A DNA stretch of 14,000 nucleotides from Takakia lepidozioides (lineage: Eukaryota > Plantae > Bryophyta). Positions 1 to 14,000 of the stretch are shown here, one piece after another (position 1 is the stretch's first letter; every line of letters begins with the position of its first letter). The stretch is taken from contig JAKLZA010000105.1 of NCBI GenBank assembly GCA_030704615.1, forward strand, positions 1 through 14,000, written 5' to 3'. The notes beneath the pieces are model-generated. The model did not search any database. It was not told the DNA's origin and was given only the letters and a program-made list of their open reading frames with translations. The position numbers were made by a program, and so were the translations under genes.

Positions 1-39
1 TATGTGAGTCATGTGTCAAGAATATACCAGAGTAACGCC

Positions 40-331
40 ATGTCGGACATTGAAATGCGGCACCGCATTTCCATGTCGGCATGGAAATGTGGCGCCGCAT
101 TTCCATGTCGGGATCGAAATGCGGCGCCGCAATTCCATGTCGGGATCGAAATGCGGCGCCGCATTTCCATGTCGGGATCGAAATGCGGCGCCGCATTTCC
201 ATGTCGGGATCGAAATGCGGTGCCGCATTTCCATGTCGGACATCGAAATTCGGCACCGCATTTCCATATCGGACATGGAAATGCGGCACCGCATTTCCAT
301 GTGGGACAAGAAAATGCGGTGCATCATTTCC
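40..331. repeat. Tandem array of 9 units of 32-33 bp (ATGTCGGGATC-GAAATGCGG-YR-CCGCATTTCC)
   Basis: Palindrome centres read at 61, 93, 125, 157, 189, 221, 254, 287 and 320. The linkers are nearly identical to each other. Confidence 0.95.
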
Positions 332-392
332 GTCCAGGTACACGAAATACCAACACGGGTCTATAAATTGATCAGAAAACGAGGTTGGCATT

Positions 393-928
393 GCAAATGC
401 GGCGACGCATTTCCAGCTTGGCAATGGAAACTTCTTTTTGGACAAGGGAATGCGGTGCCGCATTTCCGTCCAACACTTCGAAAAGTGCACCTATTTCCGA
501 CCAGCGCGATGGAATGCGTTACCGCATTTCCGAGAGAGGGTCTGCAAATTGACAAATTGCGATGTCCGTTCTGGAAATGCGGCGCCGCATTTCCATGTCC
601 GTCATCGACTTTTTTTTACAATGGAATGCGGTGCCAGTTTTTGCTGATGGGTCTGCAGTTCGAACAACCACCATCCCCAATATGGAAATGCGGCACCGCA
701 TTTCCAATCCCGCCATGTCGGCCTCCTTGTTCGACCTCCTTGTTCGACCTCTGTAAGCGTGGTGGCATCCATGCAATGAGCGGGAGAGGCCAAAACTGGC
801 GTGTGGACAAAGGAAATTTTGGAAATGCGGCACCGCATTCCCAATTCAGATTACTTTTTACTATGCCAACATTGAAATGGAAAAATTAGTCCCTCCCTGT
901 TTTGGAAATGCGGTGCCGCATTTCCAAA
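393..928. repeat. Eight dispersed copies of the same 22-bp palindrome
   Basis: Centres at 403, 456, 520, 583, 632 (partial), 694, 831 and 914. The last copy extends to TTTGGAAATGCGG-TG-CCGCATTTCCAAA. Confidence 0.9.
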
Positions 929-1113
929 AGAGGTTCTTAGAGTTGCCAAAATTTTGGAAATGCCCTGACCCATTTCTGATTTTGGGAGCGTCCTGGTTTG
1001 GGCGATTGTGTGGCTGGAATGCACACTGGAGAGGGGTCACGAATGTCGGGCAGAATTTTCTTTATATACTCTGGAAGAGAATTTACATTTACAGAGACTT
1101 CATTAAAATTCTA

Positions 1114-4100
1114 TTAATCTTGAAAATCATCGGAATCCTCATCCTGTTCTAGACTGTCCTGCTCCTCCTCCACCCCCTCAGTGCCTCTCTCATCTCCAGC
1201 GGACTGCTCGTTGGCCAGGCTTTCAAAAATCCCATCTTCCCTTGCGGAACTGTCCATCTCACCTCCGTTGGGTCGTCCTCCTCCCTGTCTGCGTCGCTCT
1301 CATCCGCTGAATCACATATGTACTTTCGTACCCGTCTACCTGTCTGAGCTGCTGCCAACTCTTTCCTTATCCTTCTGTCCTCCCTAGCCCTCTCCAAAAT
1401 CTGCTCTACTTTACTGGGATTCTCACTTCTTCTAATCGCTGTATTTGCGAGTTTAGCTGCATAACTAGGAAGGGAGTAGTCCCTCACCGGGCTCGTCATG
1501 AAGTCGGCCCTCGCAAAGAACGGGACATTCTTCCTGGCAGGAAGTGTAGGCCCTACATGTTTCGACCCGGACCCTGCAATCCTGCACATGACAATCATCA
1601 ACGAGACTAATGAGAACCACAGTCGGGAAATTCCTTTGACATAAATGACCCAGAAGGCTTTGCAAACTTACAATGTTTGCACTCACTCGTATTCCGGGTT
1701 CTCCTCTGCATCAATGTCCACTGTGTCTTCCTCGGACTCCGACGAATCCGAGGAGACTTCCGCTCTGTCGGGAGCCTTCACATTCCGTTGCAGCCCCTCC
1801 AGATGGGATCCCCACACGGATGAATCCTCCTCGTAGGCAAAGAGGTGCCGGTCGGAAAACCGCCCAGCCCACATTGAGGCACCTGTTACAATGCCATCCA
1901 CACATTACCACATGGCGCTTCAGATGTTGCGAACTACATCCTAACGAGAATTTGCAGAACAGCAGAGATCAAGATTCTGCATACCTGTCCCACAGATGAG
2001 GTCCAGCACTGTGCCCTCCACGTCTGTGCATGTCTCCATAATTGTCTGAATGAAGGCAGGGCTCCGAGTCCGTGAGTACCGCAGGGGTTCCGTTGAAGTG
2101 AGGCTATGAGGGAGAAGTTCCTTGGGAACGTTGTTGAACAGAACGTCGTAATCGAGTGGGTCGCAGTTCGGGTCAACCTTTCCTCCTCCTTCCGGAAAGC
2201 AAAGGTGGAGTTTTCCTTCACAAAGCAGTATGCATCGAACTGCTTCGTCTGCATACACAGGGGGAAAACGATTAGAAACCGAATGCGGCACCGCATTTGA
2301 AAGCACCCAAGCAAATGAATGGACGAGTGCCAGTGTCGTAATCACCTTCTTCCCTTCCGACCGAAGGCCCAGTGTGTTGATGCACGTCCACTTCTTTTTC
2401 AGAATCGGGACGGCGCTCTTGCGGGTCCACTTCGCAATTCCTGTCTGAGTGTTTTTTCCTCTGCTCGCCAGGACAACCACACAGCCTCTGTCGTCCAACA
2501 CCATGCGGGCAAGCCCGAATCCTTTCTTCCAAAAGTCCTCCGAGTACCTGTTCCAAGATGGCAAAGCTTGCAGTCCTTCCACAGGCTCTCCGTCCGGATA
2601 TCCAAGATGATCATATCGCAAGACCACTCGGTGGCATTTCCGCCCCTCCTACAATCCTTGTCTGCACACACCCTCTCAAAGAACAAGACCATATTCTGAA
2701 ATCCTGGGGTGTCGGAAGGCTCTTCGGCAGTCGCCTTCTTCAGTGCTCTGCCCTTCAGACCCTCCATGGTCTTCATGTATGCCAACTTGGCTGCCCGTCC
2801 ATCCAAAGCCGCCAAGAAACTCTCATTTACACACTGGACTACAGTTTCGGGAGCCACTTTCGGCCTCTTCATTTCCACCGGCTCGAAAGGGTGCCCCCCT
2901 GGGGGGTTGAAGAGTGCCTTCTTTGCCGAGCCAGTTCTCGTGCCTCTGGTGACAACGGTGGGCACAGGGGAGGCAGCCTGCGTTTGGGGGGGTGGGCTGG
3001 TTGCAAAGTCTCCATCGGAGTCCTCTTCCTCACCCTCTTCCTGAACAGGCTGTTTCTGCTTCTTCGTTTTGGCGGGTGTCACAACAGCTGCTCCTTGCTG
3101 GCGAGTCCTCTTCTTCGACCCCTTCTGTTGGGCCTGCACAGCTGCATCCACCGTCTTTTGTGCCATCTCAGCTGCCTTTCTGGATCTTCCAGAGCAGCAG
3201 ATTCCTTTGCCGACTTTGGCCCAGCAGGGACACGTCTTTCCTTTCTCTTCTCTTCTGCCAAGGCGTGCAGATCTTTCTCAGACTCGTCAACAATACCGCC
3301 AGACATGTCCAGGTACCACGGGCATCCAACGAGATGCGCGGGATGCCATTGTTTCTGCATCTCGGGTGTGTAGACACAGCTTGGGCCCGCCACGGTCCAA
3401 GCCATGAAGAACGGGGGCTCTTGAGCCAGGGCCCCTGTCTGAAGGAGCACGTATTTCATATACCTGCAAGGCAGTCAGCATGCGTGAGCAAAACTTGAGA
3501 CCAACCTACTGGCAGAGTGCCACCGAAAACATAAAATGCGAATGCGGTGCCGCATTTCCGAGACAAACCTCGTAACCAGGCTTCGCATACAAGGGCAGCT
3601 GTGCTTCACCTGTAACAATTCGCATTGCAGCTTTCCCCGCTCCCTCCTGATGTGTAAACTCCACGCTCCTTCTTGCTGTCTGTAGCTCTCTGGCGAAAAG
3701 GTTGTCCTTGTACGCACATCTGAAACGTGTCACGTAGTCTTCCAATGTCTGTGTTCCATCCCATTTGACGTACAAGCCGAACGAATTTGTGTGCATTACG
3801 ACTTGCTCCTTTGCATTCGACATTACCTGCCATTCCCAAATGCATTGTCACGTAGCAGTTCAGGGAATTCATGTCAGAAAAGCAAATCTGGGGAAGTACC
3901 TTGAATTACCTGGAACCACCAAGTCATACGGTTGAGCCACACATCCACTGCAGGGTCGGAAACTTCCAGTGGAAAAGACCACATTGTCCTTATGCTCTCG
4001 GATGCATTCCAGATCGACAGCCACCGTGTCTGCCATTTCCGATCCAATGTCAGTGGCTGGAAGAGAGTGGCTATTGCTAGGAAGGAATTCAGTGCATTGA

Positions 4101-6227
4101 AACCTCACCTTCTCTTTCGCCTCCACACATGCCGTTGAGAGGTGATGCAGTTTCTCCAATTGCATGGTCGGCTGCATGGCCCGAGAATAGTGTTTTGCAA
4201 TCTCGGGGATGAAGTCCTTTCCAAGTGCCGGATCTGCAATTGCCACCAGCTTCACAAGCTTTGACTTGTATTTGGTTCTGGACTTGACACCGGCTTCCTT
4301 CAAGTGCTCAGTCAATGACTGCAATGTTTTGACCTGCCCCTCACTTTCCATGAAGAAGCGTTTGGCATGGGCCAAATCCAGCTTGATGTTTGACTGCCAA
4401 CAAAAACATGCAGAAGCGTTACATTCGATTCATGTGGAAACATTACTGGAAATTGGGGAAGGATGAGCAGAGGGAAATTGGAGCACGACTTACTTCGTAT
4501 ATCACCTCCACCATTCCATCCATAGTGAGACGATACCATGTCCGGTCTGTTTTTGCAACGGCTTTCTGAATGAGCTCCGGCTCCAGCATTTCCGCAAACA
4601 TCTGCGGATCAGTAAGACCAGTTTTCCTTCCTCCCCCTGTACAGCATATGTGCCATGTGGGTATGCACGTACGCATTCTCAGTGACCCTGCAAGGCACAC
4701 TCTCCAGTTCAGTACACGGAAGCACGGAATCAAACCAGAATGGAAACCGAAATGGCACCGCATTTCGAATGTGCTAGGGCGGGTTGAGTATCTTACGATT
4801 TGAGGTCCGCCTTGCATTCTTTTCTGCCGCCTTCACCTTGAGGATGACACACTCCACCATGTAATGCCAGCCAATGTGCTTGGCATGGTTCTGCTGATGT
4901 GTACTCCCACCAGGCGAGAAGTCGGTGATTCCCGTCCCACACAAAGAAACATTTTTCCCGACATATGGCCGAAGTCGGGATCACCCTTCAGCGTCGCCTC
5001 GAATTCGTGGTTGCGAGTGTGCCAGTGGGTATCCCACGTTGACAATTCATCGGCAGTGGGTCCACGGGTTTCGCCGTCCTCATTCTCTATGGAAACGTAA
5101 AACGCTGCCGATCCAGACGGTACCCTTCTCGAAATGCGAACTTGAGCTTATCCACATCTCCGGGAAGGGCTGCCTGACGATGGGAAGGGAGACCATGCGA
5201 CAGAGTGGGATTCGAAGAGTCCGCTGGAATACCCTGCTGCCCAGAACAGACTCTGCCAATGCTACTGTGTGTCTCCTCCAACATTTTATCCGCTGCACTT
5301 TGAAATCCTCCGGAGACATGTCTGTAGGTGCCGGTAGTGGCTGAGCAGGTGGAGCATCCTCAACTGGAGCTGCACTCTGGGGCCTGTGTGCGGGCAATTC
5401 TGCCACTGCAGAGGCCTCCTCCGGGCCTGCTAGCTCATCGGTGGTGAGGTCTGCCTGCGAACGTTCAGCGGCAGCACCCTCCTCCGGTACCAAATCGAGA
5501 TCAACGGTCGATCCCATTGCCTTCGCTGCAGCAGAGTCGGCCCCAACATCTGCAGGCGGGAAATCCTCAGGAACTGAGCTTCAGCTCGTGGAAGCGGTTT
5601 TGCGGGAGATTGTTCGCCCGTCGCCCTGATTGCCTTCTGCTTCCTCATCCTTGCAGGTGGTGAAGGTGTCTGCTGCAATAGAATCTGTCTTCTACCCTGC
5701 TGCTTCATTCGCGTTGGGGGGGGTGGTGAATCGGCCTGAGCCGGTTCAGAAGCCAGTAGAGGGACGGGCTGCTTCTTCTTCGACTTTGCTGGAGAGAAGG
5801 GCCCGACCCCTGCTGGCGATTCTCCATGATCGAAGAACGCGAGTCGATCTCTGAGACTTTGAACTTGCCCTTCGAAGACGGTCTTTGAATCGCAGAGGGC
5901 TAGGCCCGGCAGGAGTACCCGCGCTCGGGGATCGGGTGGGTGTACGTGCTGCAGCTAGCTCTCGGAACTTCCTGCGGCTCTTCGGATTCCTGCGATCCCT
6001 CCAGCACGTCCACCTTTCCTGTTAGGCATGCAAACATGTTCTGCATTCAAGTCTCCTAGCATTCAGTCTAAGAATTACAGAAGCAAAATGGGGGGTTCGG
6101 TGCTCGATCAGCTGCGCGCAGCCCGATCGCATGGAGCTCTCACTGGTGGCTGGGTTGCCTGAGTGGCCTGCTGCTCGGAGATGGCAATCTCCTCCTGTAG
6201 ACGCATCTGCTTCCTCCCCTTCGGCAT
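1114..6227 (-). CDS. Multi-exon ParB/Srx-like domain + beta-class amino-(N6A/N4C) DNA methyltransferase-like fusion, ~1,400 aa, frameshifted as given
   Basis: Hand-built model with GT-AG introns. Exons approx. 6227-6144, 6018-4797, 4687-4494, 4393-4109, 4029-3910, 3826-3569, 3463-2346, 2248-1985, 1882-1687, 1581-1114. Most junctions are phase-compatible (e.g. VIYE|SNIK, GKK|TKQF, CGT-G|ASMW, EY-E|IAGS). It ends in an acidic tail (..EQDEDSDDFQD*) with TAA at 1114-1116. The start (MPKGRKQ), the first intron and the 3569 donor are less certain. About 10 single-base indels must be corrected. Confidence 0.72.
1823..2625 (-). other. Beta-class (permuted) N6-adenine/N4-cytosine methyltransferase-like domain
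   Basis: Motif IV-like CDMIILDI[P]DG comes first (needs +1 C at ~2597), followed by ARMVLDDRGCVVV. After splicing comes RSPAFIQTIMETCTDVEGTVLDLICGTG|ASMWAGRFSDRHLFAYEED, matching the KP..l...li...t..gd.VLDPF.GSGtt..aa...gR..ig.E.d block of N6_N4_Mtase enzymes. Confidence 0.8.
4820..5225 (-). other. ParB/Sulfiredoxin-like domain
   Basis: Joining adjacent frames gives LRIPLCRMVSLPIVRQP[L]PGDVDKLKFAFREGYRxGSAAFYVS...GKMFFVWDGNHRLLAW...WHYMVECVIL. This has the early Arg, the l..l..s/f...G segment and the hydrophobic-DGxHR-xxA signature of the ParB/Srx fold. Confidence 0.72.
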
Positions 6228-6304
6228 TGGCCTACGTCCGAAGTATAATTTCCGGAGCTTGCGACGAGGTCTCCTGTCTGGTGCACGAACTCCCCCCCTC
6301 TCAG

Positions 6305-6400
6305 GTTCGAGCATAAGAAGAACAGAGAGAGGGAAAGGGGCAAAGAGTGCAGATGGAAAGGGCGCGAGAGGGGTGACTGAGGAGAGACACGACAAAAGTA
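6305..6400 (-). promoter_or_regulatory. CT-rich (Y-patch-like) tract upstream of the ParB-MTase start
   Basis: The minus strand is strongly pyrimidine-rich (e.g. CCCTTTCCCTCTCTCTGTTCTTCTT) about 80-170 nt upstream of the ATG at 6227, as is typical of plant core promoters and 5' UTRs. Confidence 0.35.
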
Positions 6401-6661
6401 GATGAAACGGCGGTGATGCACCACTTGGGTTCGAAAGGTTGGACGAAAGTGTCTCCTCGTGGAGTTTGCGTCATTACGAAATTCGAATCGTTGAGGGTAC
6501 GCCGCCGTCCGAAAATCAAACATCATTATCCAACGGTCAGGCCGCGCCGCCTCATGCCCTTCAGTCAGATAGAGTGCCGACATGTGCAGCAATTCCGTTG
6601 CTCCACGTGTTCACATTTCAAGGCATTTCCGTCCCAGCGTCTGATGAGTTGGAGCGAGAAT

Positions 6662-8200
6662 GCGAATGCGGCGCCGCATTTCCGTTAAGTACCATCACGA
6701 AGCTACACATCCGTACTTGTTGGAAGAAAATGCGGCACCGCATTTCCGTTCCACCTTCATACCTTAGTTGTTGAACGGAAATACGGTGCCGCATTTCCGT
6801 CCCACAGCTCCATGTATGAGATTCAGAAGGGAAATGCGGCGCCGCATTTCCGTTCCCACTTCACATACGTTAGTTGATGAATGGAAATGCCGTGCCACAT
6901 TTCGTTCGGGAAAGTATAGAGGTCTCACCTGGACAGAAATGCGGTGTGCGCATTTCCGGTCTGAAAGGTTGAAGGTCTCACATGGATGGAAATGCGGCAA
7001 CACATTTCCGTAGCACCAGCTCCAGGCCGAAATACAAAACGGAATGCGGCGCCGCATTTCCGTTCGAGAATGTCGGAAGGTGCGACTCGAACGGAAATGC
7101 GGTGCGCATTTCTGTACCCGTTGCGCACGATTTTCAGTCAGAATGGAAATGCGGTACCGCATTTCCGTTCTGTAGAGTATTAACGTCTGACGCTGGCGGA
7201 AATGCCTTCCCGCATTTTCGTTCCACAGCTCCATGCCTCACATACAAAACGGAATGCGGTGCCGCATTTCCGTTTTGGAATGTCGGATGGTGGGACTCCG
7301 ACGGAAATGCGGTACCGCATTTCAATTCCGATGTTTCAGGATATTTCATCAGAACGGAAATGCGGTGCCGCATTTCCCTTTTAAATCTAATACATTCGTT
7401 CTGGGAATGTTGGGAGGTGCGACTCGGATGGAAATGCGTTGCCGCATTTCAGTTCCGATGGTTCCACGATTTTTCAGTCGAACGGAAATGCGGTGCCGCA
7501 TTTCCGTTTGGAATGATGGTAGGTGCGACTCGGATGGAAATACGGTGCCGCATTTCAGTTCAGATAGTTCACGATTTTCAGTCAGAACGGAAATGCGGTG
7601 CCGCATTTCCGTTCTGGATAGTGTGAATGTCTCAACCGGTCGGAATTGCGCTGTATGAAGCTGTCGGAATCTTACTCGGCTCCAGGCATCAGATACAAAA
7701 TGGAAATGCGGCGCCGCATTTCCTTTATGGAATGTCGAAAAGTGCGACTTTGACGGAAATGCGGTGCCGCATTTCTGTTCCCGTTGTTCATAATTCTCAA
7801 TCAGAACGGAAATGCGGTACCGCATTTCCGTTCCACCTTCACATACCGTGCTTTTGAATGACGGAAATGTGCTGCAGCATTTCTATCCTCAGCTCCATGC
7901 ATCAGATACAAAATGGAAATGCGGCGCCGCATTCCCGTTCTGGAATGTCGAAAAGTGCGACTCGGACGGAAATGCGGTGCCGCATTTCTGTTCCCGTTGT
8001 TCATAAATCTCAATCAGAACGGAAATGCGGTACAGCATTTCCGTTCCACCTTCACATACCGTGCTTGCTGGATGGAAATGCGTTACCGCATTTCCGTTCT
8101 GAGAGTATAAAGGTTTCCCCCGGACGGAAACTCGGTGCCGCATTTCCGTCGCTCTGTTGCATGACCAAGATGCAATACGGAAATGCGGCGCCGTATTTCC
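6662..8200. repeat. Intergenic array of 29 palindrome copies, ~53-bp period, with a ~213-bp four-monomer higher-order unit
   Basis: Centres run from 6672 to 8189 with spacings mostly 52-53 bp; a few copies are degenerate (7208, 7652, 7873). Linkers of ~31 bp fall into recurring classes, and 7690-7855 is nearly duplicated at 7903-8067. Confidence 0.95.
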
Positions 8201-8629
8201 GTCCACCAGCAATCGACAGAATCACTCGTGACGGGAAATCTGGAACCTCAATGGGTTGCATTGTTCCGAAACAACACAATTGCGGCCAGTCTTGATGAGC
8301 ACAACTTGGTTGTCTGACCGTTTTAACCAGCAGTCCTGGCACTTGTCAGTGCGAACGTTCCTGTCTGCACCGAGAATACTACTGGATCCACCCTCAGGAG
8401 AAACTGTCAGGAGATGTTATTTCGTCGCCGAATCGGCCATCATTGTCATACTCACTGGCTATGGAATCAAACCTCCCACCTTTATGCATGTAGCTTGAAA
8501 CAATACTTTCCACTTCAATGTGCGACTTCCAATCGTCGATGGACTCCGCAGATCCACTTAGATGGTGCCTGTGAGCCTTGGTCTGTCGCTATACTGAACC
8601 TCGCACTTGCCAACTCCGTGCGGTGTTCG

Positions 8630-11600
8630 ATGGCTCCGAATTCCTACGCTATAGTTTGCTGTCCTCCGCAACTTGGGAGAGCCTGGATCCCAAACGAGGG
8701 AGGACTTTGCAGAGTGACTGAAACTTACCTTTGTTCCAAATTCAAGCTCAAACCGGGCACAGTTTATTTGGAAGAAGAAAGGAAGGATGTTCCTGGACAG
8801 GTTGACGAGACCATTGTCGTGCTAGGTAACGACGGAGGTTGCGGAATCGAATGGCACGTTCCCCCGTCAGACACCATCCTGTACCGAGCTGTGGGAATGC
8901 CCATTCCCTTTCCGAATCAGTCGCTGCCCACACCATCCACAAAGGAGTCCGGAAACCGAGAGGCGGCCACTGCCAACAGAGAGGTATGCAACGATAATCA
9001 TTCCCGACCTGGACCGTCAAGACCCTCCATAGCTTCTCGTGTGGACGTATTCGACATTTCCGACGAGGAAGATGATTGCATTGAGGTACCCATGTCCTCC
9101 ACACGGTCGTTCAAATCCGGCATGGACGTCTCTGTAGGTGCTACGCATGTGCCCTCGAGCATAACTCCAACCCGGTCCATTGTGCAGCTCCTACGACAAC
9201 ATCACCTCGATGGTTCTCGCTCCGAGCTGGCTGCTCTCGACTATGCCAAATTCCCAGTCAGAAAGGTAACTTTTCTGCCTCCCGAAGTCGATGGCAATGT
9301 CATCTTTGAGTTTCCACCTGTTTCTTCGTCAAAGAAAGCCTCCGGGATGTTAACAGACATGGATCGAAAGCATGACGGACACCCCTGGTGTGTGACGAAG
9401 ACCAGTAGCACGAAAATTGCTGATGGTGTTCGTGTACGATATGTCCTCTGTGCGGGGAAGCTGAGGTGCCTCAATCCCACCTGCTTCCACTTTCTCTCCA
9501 AAGGAGGGGAGAGAAACGAGACGGATTGGACTGGCACAACGCATCATCCATTCATTGTCTCCAGCCAAGCTCCTGCGGGTTCTTTCAAGTGTGCACATTG
9601 CAAAGAACCACCGACGTGCATGTCCATGTGCAGAGCCAAGCAATATTACGTAATCCATTTGCTCCCGGACTTGACTAGAGCTTGCATACACGTTGGGGTC
9701 CACTGCCACCCCTTGGCGAGAGGCAACATGCGTGAGGCTGTGCAGGAAGCACACGACATCATAAAAGAGGAGGTCAAATTGAGCCCCGGAGCCAGACCAA
9801 AGCAGATTCAGCTGAAGGCAGCCCACAAGATTGCTCTTGGCAAAATCATGTCTGAAGATGGTTCCGACCGAGAGCCCTTGACCGAAGACGAGATGCGTGA
9901 CCTCTTGGAGTCCGTCTCGCACGTTTGTAGTCCGAATGTGCGGAATCACATCGTATCTTGCAAGCAGGAGTTCGGCAGGGGGTCGGACATGTACTCAATC
10001 CTGGAGGTGAAACGAATGACTGGATATGACTACATCCAAGGTAGCAGGTTTCCAGGGCAAGGCGGCGAATCCGATCGTTGTTACATTTTCAAAATGTCGA
10101 CGTGTGGGCCTGGGAGTGGAGTCGACTTGGTCACTCGCATGACAACTGGAAACTTGTCGAATGCTTGGGTGATGTTTGATCACATCAAGCGAATTACAAA
10201 CCATCAGTGGGTGACTATGGGTGCGCATGTTTATGACTATCACTCCAAGAGGCTCATGACGATTGCAATCTGCGAGATGAAAGGGGAGGACACACAGTCC
10301 GAGATGCATCTGTGGGAGGGCATAAACGAGCAGATGGCAAGGGCGGGATTGCCAGAGCCCAATTTCAGGGGATTCATGGCAGACAACGCTCAGGCCAACT
10401 GGGCAGCGGTGCGGCGTGTGTACGGTGAGGACCCCAATGTTCCAATGGAGGGGAAAGAGAGATCCTGTGGATTCCATTGGATGCAGAGTCTATCCCACTA
10501 CACTACCAAATTTGTTGCTAGCTCATTCCAGGCTGAACACCGTGTCCTTTGTACGGCGTGGAAGGATGCACCCACATATGATGACGCGGAGGTTAAGTTT
10601 GCTATCATCGAGGCTTGGTGGAACACGTCAGGTGCAGTGGAGACAACCAATCTGGGAGCATTGCACAGCTGGTTGGGGTGGTGGCATTTTCGGTATCGAC
10701 AGTTCGGACAGTACATGCGGGAGGTAGGCTGCTGTCAATTTCGTTCATTTGTCTTTCTGTTACGGACATTTCGATTGGTCCCTCACCGTTGTTTGTGTCC
10801 TTCTAGGAGCGGTGCTTGGATTCCGACACGGACATGCCGAACACGAATATGGCAGAATCGGTCCACTCCTCCTGGCGAGCGTCTTCTGCCGCACATCTGG
10901 TGGACGTAGTGACGGCCACAACGGAGGACATCGACAGAGCAATCATGCAGCAAGCCACGTACTACAAGTTCCTGAGCGGCAAACAATGGGGCTTTGGGCC
11001 GGACAGGGAGGAATTGTTGGTACGAACAGCTTCGAGGTCCAAGAATCCAGTGAAATGGGCGACAGCATTGCGAGAGAAGATCAAAGGGACGCCTCTGCAC
11101 CGCAGAGGTGAACACCTAGAGGGGGACGTCCGGACTCGCCCTGTCAGGCGGAGGATTGAAGAGGAACCCGGGTGCGAAGAGGATTCCTGGAGATCCGACA
11201 GGAACATTCGGACAGCACCTCGAGGTCCCGTCATGTTGCCGCACAATGTGTCTTCCAGCAGTGGAAGCCCAAGAAATTCCAGATCGCCGTCGCCTTCAAC
11301 CGGGGATTTCGTGCAACAAATTCCCACCGCTCCCTGCCCCACATTCCGCCCGCTGTTATGCAGTATGGCCAAGCCATTGTGGAGACGACTGTGTCTGCCT
11401 CACAGTGGAGAATTGCTCGCACAAAGCCGTCGTTTCGAGGAAGGTGTTCCGCAATTCGTGTGGATACACGGCAACGTTGTTTAGAGATGATAAGGAGGAA
11501 TCCAGATGGGGCTGTCCCTGCTCCTACTTTTACAGGAAGATTTGTCCATGCAAAGTTTGCGGAGGCGACAACCACCCAGTTCTGGTTCTGCAGGCACGAC

Positions 11601-12236
11601 ATTATGACTTGCGTGTATGGAAAGCCCAAGTACGGCATACAGACAATGCCAGAGGCTCCCCCGGTGTGGCCGGTGGAACCAGGCAGCGATCTGAGTCAGG
11701 TTGAGGCCGACGCCCTTACCGCCGCAGGATTTCGGATGGTGCAGCGCACTGACGTGCCCAGACAACCATTTCCGCTTCCACAGCCTCCACCACCGACCCC
11801 TGTGAGAGCAAGAACAATGGGACACGACAGCTCTAAGCATCCTACACACCGTTGGGGGAAACCGAAGAGGCGGCGACCTCCCTCAAAAGTGAACGAGACA
11901 AGGATGGGGAATGCACTTCGGATGAACTGTACAATCCAGAGCTCGACAGAAGTGCCCCCACTAGGATTCGGGCGTGTGTATCAGATGGCCACGGCGGGCT
12001 CAGCTGTTCGCAATGAGGTGTACACCATCACCATTTCAGAATTACCCACCTGCAATTGCACCGACTTCCAGATCATGGCGAACAAGGGGGCATCATACTG
12101 CCCTTGCAAGCATTTGTACTACGTGTACCTAAAGAGACTCCGTTGTAATTCCACAACTCATCACTTCATACATGCACCAGGGTTGAGCCCCCAGGAGGTT
12201 CACACTCTTCTGAATATGGATCCAGGGGACCAGTGA
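8630..12236 (+). CDS. MULE-like DDE transposase with GCM-like domain and C-terminal SWIM zinc finger (~1,170 aa)
   Basis: GCM/WRKY-like region DGHPW..VLCAGKLRCLNPTC..CAHC..C..HVGVHCHP (9374-9712). Catalytic candidates: WVMFD (10178), FMADNAQANWAAVRRVY (10382), CGFH (10466-10477), NTNMAESVH (E at 10855). SWIM CNC..CKH (12051-12113). One intron (10724-10806) and one 1-nt frameshift between ~11205 and 11365. The start at 8630 (MAPNS) is preferred, but the frame is open from 8414. Confidence 0.85.
10724..10806 (+). other. 83-nt phase-0 spliceosomal intron in the transposase
   Basis: GAG|GTAGGC...TGTCCTTCTAG|GAG with a T-rich interior. Removing it joins ORF 8414-10909 to ORF 10816-11484 in frame (QYMRE|ERCLDSD) and supplies the catalytic Glu. 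Confidence 0.88.
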
Positions 12237-12481
12237 GCTTGGCTTGCGGTCCACATACAATGGTACGCCCATCGGATAGTAGAACTGTACTGCTGCCAGT
12301 ACCTCAGACTCTGGCCACACAAAGGTCCGACATATGTCTTGCCTACCAGTAACCTGTTTTGATCGAACTAAGATATTACTATATCGTTCACTTGTTTCCA
12401 CGTGCATGTATTTTTGTATGTTGGAGGGTTCATGTTTTTCTGCTTTCCGAAAACTTGCTCTCCTCATTCGACCTCCGACAA

Positions 12482-12600
12482 GGAAATGCGGCGCCGAATT
12501 TCCAAGTATCGTCGTAGGTACCCCCAGAGGCGGCCTTCGCCAACACCAAACCGCTCCGAAATTTCGCACGTGCGAACCCTAATGCGGCACCCTATTTCCC
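12482..12600. repeat. Two imperfect palindrome copies downstream of the transposase
   Basis: GGAAATGCGGCGCCGAATTTCC at 12482-12503 and AATGCGGCACCCTATTTCC at 12581-12599. A further half-site TGCCGCATTTCC lies at 12951-12962. Confidence 0.8.
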
Positions 12601-12810
12601 AGTTCAGTTGCAAACCTTTCCGCCGAATACCCGAAGAAGACAGAATTGTGAAGTACTGCAGACTGTATTGGTGCAGACTCCATTGGTTCAATCGCGGCAA
12701 AAGGGTCAGCTTCATTCCAATGTTAAGGCATGTAAAACCGCGGAATACTCTATACAGGCCAGTATGCGACGTCCTTTTGCAGTGGTATACTGGATTTCCC
12801 GTTGCACGGT

Positions 12811-13075
12811 CACTTATTTCCATGAGCGGATCTATAAAACCATGAGCGGACTTGTTACTGACGACATATCTTCGCCGCATTACATGATCTGGAACGTCCA
12901 AAAACGGCAAGGTCAAATAAAAAAACTATTATTTTAATACTTGTTTAATCTGCCGCATTTCCAAATTTGGAGGAGTCCGCTCATGAAATCCGCGTATCTT
13001 AGACTTCGGCTCACCGCTCATGCGGCTCATGCGGCTCATGGCTCATGGCTCATGGTTTCTGCTCATGAAATAGTA
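12811..13075. repeat. CATGAGC(GG) short-repeat cluster, putative subterminal region of the element
   Basis: CATGAGCGGA at 12821 and 12841. The reverse form GCTCATG occurs at 12979, 13016, 13025, 13034, 13041, 13048 and 13061. An AT-rich core lies at ~12915-12950. Confidence 0.75.
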
Positions 13076-14000
13076 AACCTCGCCATGAAGAGCTGACCCA
13101 ATTGACAGCACTGTGTAAATCCGTCCATACCCCGGAGAAGGGACTTCGGTAATACGAGACACCCGAGCCTGCAAAATTCTAGCAGATTCCATCTTGCATT
13201 CGTGATCTGCACCCGAAGCGAAACGGCGCACTGTTTTTCCATCTCTTTTTGTTGGGTGGGAGTCGGCACAGGGTGGCGGCATTGCCGGAGCATGTGGCAC
13301 ATATGTGCCGACAGTGCATGAGGGCACCACCCGGGACCGTGCAAGACAGAACCCTCCCTCCTCCAGCATGCTTATCTCGGTTGATGACAGCGACGTCCCA
13401 ATTTGCACAGGCCAAATTGCGGGGGGGGGGGTTTCATTATCACCGAAGGACGAACTGTTCCCTTCACGCATCGTGCCATATCGTCTGGGCAGAACCAAAA
13501 TTTGTGGTCCTTTGACTCCCCACTATGATAAGGTCGGAACAACCTTGTGAATGTTGGAGCTGGAGTCCCCCTGGAGCCTTTGCATATCTTTGATTTGCAT
13601 TTCTTGAATGAGGGGGTCCGAATTGCCATGCAAGCCACTCTAGATCCTGGTGGGGTGCGTTCTATATGCCACTCACTATCAATGCAATCGGATTCCTGCA
13701 CCATGGCCACCGCCTCCTCCAATGGGATTCCCGCTACTGTGCTTGTATGTTCTGCACGTGCTCCACTGGAGGAGGACCCATCTGGGAAGGGGCGGGCACA
13801 CGACTCAGTGTGCAGTGGAGACACCTTTGGCACAGAGAAATTGACCCTGTCTGGCCGATGGGAATCTCCATCTGACCCTGGAAGAGTGTTCAATTTCCTT
13901 TTGCATGATCCAAATCTTTCCTCGCCTTCCAAATGGGGGATCCTGGATTGTAGAGCGGACCCTTCAGTGCATCTGTTTAGAGCTCTGGCCATCTTTGACG
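13073..14000 (-). pseudogene. 3' part of a second, diverged transposase of the same family, truncated before the SWIM finger
   Basis: Colinear with the first copy: HLEGE/HLEGD, DSHRPDR/DSWRSDR, WHIER/WRIAR, PAPTFT/PAPTFT, FWFC/FWFC, IWPVQIGTSLS/VWPVEPGSDLS, HPTKRDGK/HPTHRWGK, TEVPSPGYGRIY/TEVPPLGFGRVY, GEVY/NEVY. Frameshift at the G11 run 13421-13431. The frame is open to the window edge. Confidence 0.88.

Follow-up and report, generated by a model that had tools for sequence, protein, structure and literature searches.

The stretch analyzed here (the window) comprises positions 1 to 14,000 of contig JAKLZA010000105.1 of Takakia lepidozioides (Bryophyta). It carries a transposase gene and, on the opposite strand, an accessory gene whose protein family combines a ParB-like domain with a methyltransferase (MTase)-like domain. 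One element-specific palindrome, organized as arm-GCGG-N2/3-CCGC-arm, recurs at high density in the non-coding parts of the element, more sparsely 3' of the transposase. With a probability of about 60%, based on sequence comparison and on analogy with known systems, we propose that the window represents most of one copy of a two-gene, cut-and-paste DNA transposon of approximately 13 kb and that the palindromes are the sites of an element-encoded, likely ParB-like, dimer. Judged by its sequence relatives, the element family lives in early-diverging land plants: Riccia, Adiantum and eukaryotic contigs of peat-moss metagenomes.

Gene pair and palindromes within shared termini

The first-pass annotation of the window had described a divergent pair, a transposase gene on the plus strand and a ParB/MTase gene on the minus strand, sharing an intergenic palindrome array. 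This layout was recovered: the transposase-like gene spans 8414-12236, starting in an 831-codon open reading frame (ORF) that opens at 8414, the ParB/MTase-like gene runs divergently from about 5517 down to 1686, and 24 palindrome sites lie between them.

The same pair recurs in relatives; the transposase has relatives that are about 40% identical. A metagenome scan with the transposase yielded 462 relatives, of which the best 80 loci, mostly from peat-moss samples, were examined. At least ten distinct metagenome loci have the ParB exon on the other strand, at a distance of 3.6-9.6 kb upstream from the transposase, and three further loci end just short of the position where this exon is expected. 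Among the moss loci examined, about eight lack the accessory gene and two have a rearranged one; in-frame stops are present in most moss copies. Loci L067 and L079 are paralogues with 79% identity that are collinear over 12 kb spanning both genes. The head-to-head order is common to the liverwort, moss-type, L001-type and window lineages, the transposases of which are 35-42% identical. Locus L004 (377-2460, plus strand) matches L002 at 98% identity beginning 3.0 kb before the transposase; farther upstream, the MTase half of its accessory gene is inverted, with a frameshift at motif I, and L004 is a rearranged or nested copy.

The boundaries of the element are best defined in the liverwort Riccia sorocarpa. 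In the chromosomal locus L086, the accessory gene (10001-13843, plus strand), annotated as encoding a protein of 1207 amino acids, is divergent from the transposase gene (7668-4638, minus strand). Three copies on two chromosomes (L086, L087 and L088) are 96-98% identical and have a common right terminus (...CATGGTCTCGTG), placed within 3 nt and located 2 kb past the accessory gene, beyond which three different flanks follow. The left end is kept in L086 only. There, imperfectly matching inverted sequences of about 70 bp (left part about 2357-2424) and a direct repeat, AAATTTA, would bound an element of 13.5 kb in this one copy. L087 and L088 contain the same 1.37 kb insertion (L087:15764-17131) about 90 bp inside the right terminus, and L087 has an additional insertion of 1.2 kb in the transposase. 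In the metagenome, L077 and L061 have a left boundary in common, which precedes the transposase match by about 2.8 kb and at which no terminal inverted repeat (TIR) was found. Position 16854 of L067 was considered as an end of the moss element and rejected, being specific to L067.

Comparison of these copies shows that the accessory gene and the transposase are parts of one mobile element of about 13 kb, the pair and the palindromes being inherited together within shared termini. The accessory gene is thus not a single-copy gene that stays in synteny without the transposase; it is multi-copy and stands head-to-head with the transposase in many independent copies. Nor do termini fall between the two genes, as the Riccia pair and its arrays lie within shared termini.

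In the window, the 20-nt palindrome GAAATGCGG-YR-CCGCATTTC occurs at 41 sites versus 0.00 expected (pattern GAAATGCGGYRCCGCATTTC, at most two mismatches; expectation from 200 shuffles). Most of these sites belong to two arrays. In array A, the first nine copies form a tandem with a 32-33 bp period at 52-297, after which the spacing becomes looser, and array B combines a lattice of about 53 bp with higher-order repeats of 213 bp. Isolated palindromes are found at 3539, in the middle of the accessory gene, and at 12483. A degenerate palindrome (12581-12600) and a half-site (12951-12965) lie further to the right, and weaker copies or half-sites were also seen at 2283, in an intron of the accessory gene, and at 4754. 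The same palindrome had been reported at both outer flanks of the pair. The distribution is lopsided, with 15 sites in the left flank and one good site plus remnants in the right flank. As array A begins at base 36, the left end of the element is probably located beyond the window.

When the centre of the palindrome was left free and one substitution per arm was permitted, 36 sites were counted. Their central dinucleotides are CG (12), TG (13), CA (6) and TA (5), and nothing else, and both arm CpGs are retained in 35 of the 36. Since the arms keep their CpGs and the centre varies by transitions only, the arms appear to be constrained half-sites around an unconstrained centre, the drift of which looks like the signature of methyl-CpG decay. 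Within array B, TG outnumbers CA by 10 to 1 in the centre, probably through duplication of variant units.

Relatives have palindromes of their own. L086 contains 27 copies of CCRGCGR-N3-YCGCYGG versus 0.03 expected, all of which fall within 2630-15163, the flanks being free of them. Six of these are located 3' of the transposase, nine in the intergenic region, one in the accessory gene and eleven 3' of it, the last group with a period of 66-69 bp; these zones parallel those of the window. L001 has five copies of CTCTCGG-NN-CCGAGAG spaced 139 bp apart on the upstream side of its accessory gene, and L002 has GTTCGG-TG-CCGAAC-type sites. Two further palindromes of L001, at 12077 and 12204, fall in the presumed transposase intron; the transposase gene of the window has none. 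Seven moss loci that contain the accessory-gene segment, or align collinearly with it, have CpG-decayed CTTTYGGYRCCRAAAG arrays; one of them, L067, has nine sites of this type, four of them at a 51 bp period. Two more loci of this kind have a single weak CTTTYGGYRCCRAAAG match each. In nine other moss loci, where no divergent accessory gene lies upstream, no site is present, 10 kb flanks included. The arm sequence is lineage-specific around a shared GG-N2/3-CC core, which is the pattern expected of a dimeric protein that co-evolves with its sites.

Transposase and accessory protein

In the transposase encoded by the window, the first D lies in FDH, the second in FMADNAQANW, and ERSCGFHW provides a CxxH motif. 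Inspection of an alignment with relatives gave FDH, FMADxAQANW, ERSCxFHW and NLAE(S/T)xH. Mutator-like elements (MULEs) are characterized by a DDE core, a C/DxxH after the second D and a third motif of the N-x-x-E-S type, by target-site duplications of 8-11 bp and long TIRs and, commonly but not universally, by a C-terminal SWIM zinc finger. We take the motif pattern of the window transposase to be that of Mutator-like transposases. The SWIM zinc finger lies at about 12021-12131, with its CxC...CxH pattern visible at about 12050-12115. Pfam returned only a weak SWIM match for the window transposase (PF04434, E=0.036); the same profile matches 3 of 13 relatives, with a best E-value of 6.8e-5. 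The Pfam KDZ transposase and CxC models matched neither the window ORF nor the relatives. Between 11202 and 11346 the reading frame changes within an unconserved linker, by an intron or a frameshift; the transposase otherwise reads open and looks intact. An identity with Sola1 was rejected, as the transposase of the Ectocarpus element Sola1-1_Ec32 shares, by eye, none of its motifs. The first-pass description as a eukaryotic MULE-like transposon consequently stands in part: introns and the fern, liverwort and peat-moss relatives support a eukaryotic DNA transposon, and the MULE-like label, drawn from motifs and the SWIM finger, is reasonable as a description.

The accessory protein family was delineated with the intact ParB exon of L001, for which phmmer gave 505 matches among 1.8 billion representatives. 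Its named members come from Adiantum ferns and Riccia sorocarpa and are all annotated as 'hypothetical'. A UniRef label, 'Trimethylguanosine synthase', on the Riccia proteins P0192, P0190 and P0193 looks like an automatic mislabel, the nearest Pfam family being N6_N4_Mtase. Three Adiantum nelumboides proteins (P0173, P0177 and P0182) carry annotations of a fusion to retrotransposon gag/capsid or SH3 domains and are probably gene-model chimeras in nested transposon insertions.

The ParB-like domain was modeled with AlphaFold (AF2) from 42 sequences, with a mean confidence (pLDDT, predicted local distance difference test) of 92.6. In a Foldseek search of the PDB, all 50 top matches of this model were Noc, ParB, sulfiredoxin, KorB, PadC or SbnI (best E=6e-3, probability up to 1.00). 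Across the 42 sequences, the G and N of a G-N-H-R motif are invariant and the H and R nearly so; an A three residues past the R was read in individual sequences, the window having GNHRLLA. The resulting G-N-H-R-x-x-A fits the GxxRxxA nucleotide-binding motif. Pfam ParBc did not match the family, for which only DndB appeared, at an E-value of about 0.09.

For the MTase-like domain, the model of the fern protein P0165 has a pLDDT of 54, with a confident N-terminal half. Its best Foldseek matches are CcrM (6pbd, E=4e-5), M.BceJIV and M1.HpyAVI, followed by MT-A70 enzymes. CcrM, M.BceJIV and M1.HpyAVI are permuted beta-class DNA adenine methyltransferases. The Pfam profile PF01555 (N6_N4_Mtase) matches the Riccia homologs (P0192, of 1207 amino acids, and fragments) at E=9.4e-6 to 5.2e-5 and 23.7-26.2 bits, under the 26.7-bit cut-off and covering no more of the profile than its motif I end; it matched neither the window nor the fern proteins. 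The permuted motif order, IV before I, is found throughout, with some 150-180 residues separating D-x-P-x-G from the later (L/I)D..G.G...GR in the window, L001, P0165 and P0192. Motif IV differs by lineage: DLPFGG or DVPFGG in ferns, DLPTG in Riccia, and DVPEG, DIPEG, DMPED or DGPNG in moss-type copies. Profile and sequence searches of PDB sequences with the MTase, ParB and transposase alignments and with P0192 returned nothing informative, and a scan of viral contigs with the ParB alignment returned no relative. On the predicted folds and conserved motifs, the family-level assignment to a ParB/Srx fold is right, and that to a permuted, CcrM-like (N6_N4) Rossmann MTase domain is probably right. 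Amino-MTase activity of the family is uncertain because of the non-canonical motif IV.

The gene in the window itself is broken. Its MTase-like domain has a motif IV region at about 2600 that reads D-HLG-YPDG, interrupted by a 3-residue insertion, and a motif I at about 1950 (VLDLICGTG, followed by GR..F). Between 5220 and 4898, the ParB-like region matches relatives in three reading frames, which amounts to at least three frameshifts (near 5172, near 5105 and at 4950-4985) and a probable fourth near 4900. The homologous segments abut or overlap across frames and leave no room for introns, hence their reading as frameshifts; assembly noise is an unlikely cause, since the neighbouring transposase ORF is unbroken for 770 codons. 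Judged by its reading frames, the window copy of the accessory gene is a dead pseudogene. The earlier proposal of a ParB-amino-methyltransferase gene thus holds for the ParB/Srx fold of the family and probably for its MTase fold, and not for the window gene, which is broken, or for motif IV, which is non-canonical. Pfam and NCBIfam scans of the ORFs and stop-free pieces of the window gave SWIM only and no match for the accessory gene; the same scans of relatives added only the sub-threshold PF01555 matches in Riccia. A stop-free stretch of 172 codons (1152-1667, minus strand) between the accessory-gene stop and array A has no homolog in any locus compared and could be an untranslated region or chance.

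The features of the window are listed in Table 1. To the right of the main element, and tail-to-tail with it, lies a second, strongly diverged C-terminal transposase fragment (13046-14000, minus strand) that has one frameshift and ends before the SWIM finger. It was rejected as a second copy of the same element, given the lack of nucleotide similarity to 10800-12236 and the truncation before SWIM. It probably derives from another family member and marks a transposon-rich neighbourhood. A microsatellite-like run (GCTCATG / GCGGCTCATG) occupies 13009-13053, at the truncation point of this fragment.

Table 1. Coordinates of the genes, predicted domains and palindrome arrays in the window
Feature	Position	Strand	Remarks
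Array A	36-976 (sites 52-924)	none	15 palindrome copies, 3' of accessory gene
MTase-like C-terminal domain	1686-2648	-	last exon 1886-1686; open across two short introns
Accessory middle exons	3193-4725	-	conserved; CPWY(L/V)DM motif
ParB/Srx-like domain	4836-5220	-	VWDGNHRLLAW, fits GxxRxxA; frameshifted
Accessory N-terminal part	5221-5517	-	poorly conserved; candidate ATG 5517
Array B	6663-8199	none	24 palindrome copies filling divergent intergenic region
Transposase exon 1	8414-10723	+	770 codons; Cys/His-rich N-terminal domain, FDH, FMADNAQANW, ERSCGFHW
Transposase intron	10724-10806	+	83 nt, GT-AG; placed by comparison with relatives
Transposase 3' exons	10807-12236	+	catalytic E motif NTNMAES, SWIM zinc finger; stop 12234-12236
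Lone palindrome	12483-12502	none	1 mismatch; 3' of transposase

Proposed role of the palindromes and rival readings

In the mechanism that we propose, the palindromes would be the cognate binding sites of a dimeric protein encoded by the element. The likeliest binder would be the ParB-like accessory protein, by analogy with the ParB-parS, Noc-NBS and KorB-OB systems. This protein is favoured because copies that have no divergent accessory gene upstream are also devoid of sites, and because arrays in red algae adjoin an accessory gene with a ParB domain in an unrelated transposase superfamily. The accessory protein would nucleate on the arrays, and the bound protein may then either bring its MTase domain to the element's own DNA or clamp the divergent promoter and the element ends. 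The window copy, unable to make the accessory protein, would need intact copies in trans, and other copies of its type may rely on them likewise. Self-marking of the element DNA by the accessory protein is a plausible hypothesis.

Several observations weigh against this proposal. With respect to the element as a unit, a search for TIRs and target-site duplications (TSDs) in the window showed that the flanks share the palindrome only, and the window termini were not located; the 7-bp direct repeat AAATTTA is a candidate TSD from a single copy, L086. About half of the moss copies are without the accessory gene. The Pfam models MULE, Transposase_mut and DBD_Tnp_Mut gave no match at E-values up to 10 for the window ORF and 12 relatives. 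With respect to the binder, the Cys/His-rich N-terminal domain of the transposase is an alternative candidate, and a helix-turn-helix (HTH) DNA-binding domain was not identified in the accessory protein, no structure search for an HTH having been made. With respect to the enzyme, the C-terminal half of the P0165 MTase model falls below a pLDDT of 50, with a template modelling (TM) score of about 0.36; motif IV is never (D/S/N)PP(Y/F/W) in the family, the first proline missing everywhere, and its aromatic residue is present in ferns only, most lineages being without it.

The accessory protein may alternatively be a ParB- or KorB-like regulator or clamp that carries its MTase domain as a pseudo-enzyme, acting by promoter control or DNA bridging and without methylation. 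The motif IV variants outside the ferns, from DLPTG to DGPNG, are in line with this view, as are the sub-threshold PF01555 match at the motif I end and the much stronger conservation of the ParB-domain motif relative to motif IV. Ferns, liverwort and moss-type copies nevertheless all retain motif I and the GR...(E/D) segment, and the MTase domain as a whole has been retained over deep divergence. The amino-MTases Erm and KsgA have an N(L/I)P(Y/F) motif, which the DLPF and DVPF of the ferns resemble. We regard a pseudo-enzyme as possible but on the whole doubtful.

A further alternative is that the transposase itself binds the arrays, as subterminal and internal sites comparable to those of En/Spm TnpA, the Ac hexamers and MURA, and that the accessory gene is cargo that takes no part in recognition. 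Two of the three arrays in Riccia lie 0.3-0.7 kb inside the element ends, arrays or sites are found near both presumed ends in the window, and the Cys/His-rich domain of the transposase is conserved, and no DNA-binding domain was found in the accessory protein, again with no structure search aimed at an HTH. The densest arrays are however central, between the genes. The 0 of 9 moss loci with sites in the absence of a divergent upstream accessory gene and the red-algal arrays next to a ParB-domain gene in an unrelated transposase superfamily likewise argue for the accessory protein, and we consider binding by the transposase alone unlikely.

The proposal of a ParB-like accessory dimer can also be extended to a full cycle. 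Here, nucleoside triphosphate (NTP)-dependent, ParB-type clamps would load at parS-like arrays, spread, and write N6-methyladenine (6mA) or N4-methylcytosine (4mC) on the element's own DNA, either to oppose host silencing by 5-methylcytosine (5mC) or as a label for the transposase. Bryophytes and ferns would have such a module in common, and it would repeatedly have passed from one transposon superfamily to another. In this complete form the scenario is speculative, and we deem it unlikely.

That the two genes are mere neighbours in a repeat-rich region, through segmental duplication or two nested elements, is highly improbable: several moss loci, L077 and L061 with their common left boundary among them, do have a transposase but no accessory gene, and the window also has an unrelated transposase fragment at 13046-14000, but the same head-to-head order persists across four lineages with transposases that are 35-42% identical, a terminus past the accessory gene is common to three Riccia copies, which are spread over two chromosomes and have different flanks, and 27 of 27 Riccia palindromes lie within the same boundaries.

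Relation to known systems and significance

The first-pass annotation considered this architecture to be probably uncharacterized, without ruling out an earlier description. This part does not hold, as similar algal accessory genes with inverted-repeat arrays were reported in 2025 (PMC12477816; bioRxiv 10.1101/2025.02.11.637652). In Ectocarpus, the 21.5 kb element Sola1-1_Ec32 has an opposite-strand gene for a protein of 1104 amino acids that combines a ParB-like domain with a DNA MTase domain of predicted 4mC or 6mA type; the authors suggest that proteins of this sort bind to the transposon that encodes them and modify it, and they cite examples from green and red algae (Dinatale et al. 2025, PMC12477816). 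Among the accessory genes of red-algal Plavaka elements, PAG2 encodes a PF01555 methylase with a SET domain and PAG3 a ParB-like domain with a 2-oxoglutarate (2OG) oxygenase; PAG-type genes are also present in Mutator (Chondrus) and Zisupton elements (Petroll et al. 2025, bioRxiv 10.1101/2025.02.11.637652).

Set against these descriptions, the features of the present element fit the algal PAG3/Sola1-1_Ec32 type, in which a ParB-like domain and a modifying domain are carried by a DNA transposon with inverted-repeat arrays. With Sola1-1_Ec32 it shares the format of a giant DNA transposon and an opposite-strand accessory gene with ParB-like and MTase domains, the accessory proteins being likened by description. 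The transposases are unrelated (DNT..ENKN and GHTH in Sola1-1_Ec32; FDH, FMAD, CxxH and NxAES here). Sola1-1_Ec32 has a 4-bp TSD and 282-bp TIRs, and palindrome arrays, present here, were not reported for it. With PAG2 and PAG3 it shares, again by description, the ParB-like N-terminal domain, the adjoining tandem inverted-repeat arrays and a methylase, which is of PF01555 type there and putatively so here, and with the red-algal work the hypothesis of self-binding and self-modification. In red algae, ParB and methylase reside on separate proteins and the carrier is EnSpm/Plavaka, whereas here both are combined in one protein, the carrier is MULE-like and the hosts are land plants. What is new here is therefore a carrier transposase different from the brown-algal case, a fusion different from the red-algal case, and land-plant hosts. 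Our literature search found no description of such elements in land plants.

Similarities to more distant systems are limited to parts of the design. Prokaryotic and phage fusions of ParB with N6_N4 methylases, together with ParB-parS, Noc and KorB, share the ParB/Srx fold, the GxxRxxA motif, a permuted CcrM-like fold (predicted here) and clustered palindromes. Unlike in these systems, Pfam ParBc has no match, PF01555 stays below threshold, motif IV is not DPPY, the accessory gene is eukaryotic with introns, and no ParA partner is present. VANDAL MULEs of Arabidopsis belong to the Mutator superfamily and encode VANC, an accessory protein proposed to act on short repeated motifs in their own non-coding DNA. 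This is a functional analogy only, as VANC is not a ParB/MTase protein and causes methylation loss. Like the putative MTase of the present family, MpDN4MT1 of Marchantia and N4CMT of bdelloid rotifers are eukaryotic proteins that descend from prokaryotic amino-MTases. MpDN4MT1, the product of a host gene with sperm expression, carries the canonical TSPPY motif, whereas the present family has D-(L/V/I)-P-x and is transposon-borne; a link to MpDN4MT1 was rejected on account of its TSPPY motif.

A transposon that encodes its own DNA-binding and DNA-modifying protein and carries the sites for it would be a self-contained epigenetic module. So far, this idea has been based on brief remarks in genome papers on brown and red algae, and the present family extends the algal pattern to land plants, being found in a liverwort, in ferns and in contigs associated with mosses. 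As an entry point for experiments, the family is well suited. Intact copies are available in the assembled genome of Riccia sorocarpa, the palindromes are countable and lineage-specific, and copies without the accessory gene, which also lack the sites, form a natural control, so that binding, NTP dependence and methylation are directly testable. The outcome may also bear on the origin of eukaryotic 6mA and 4mC enzymes.

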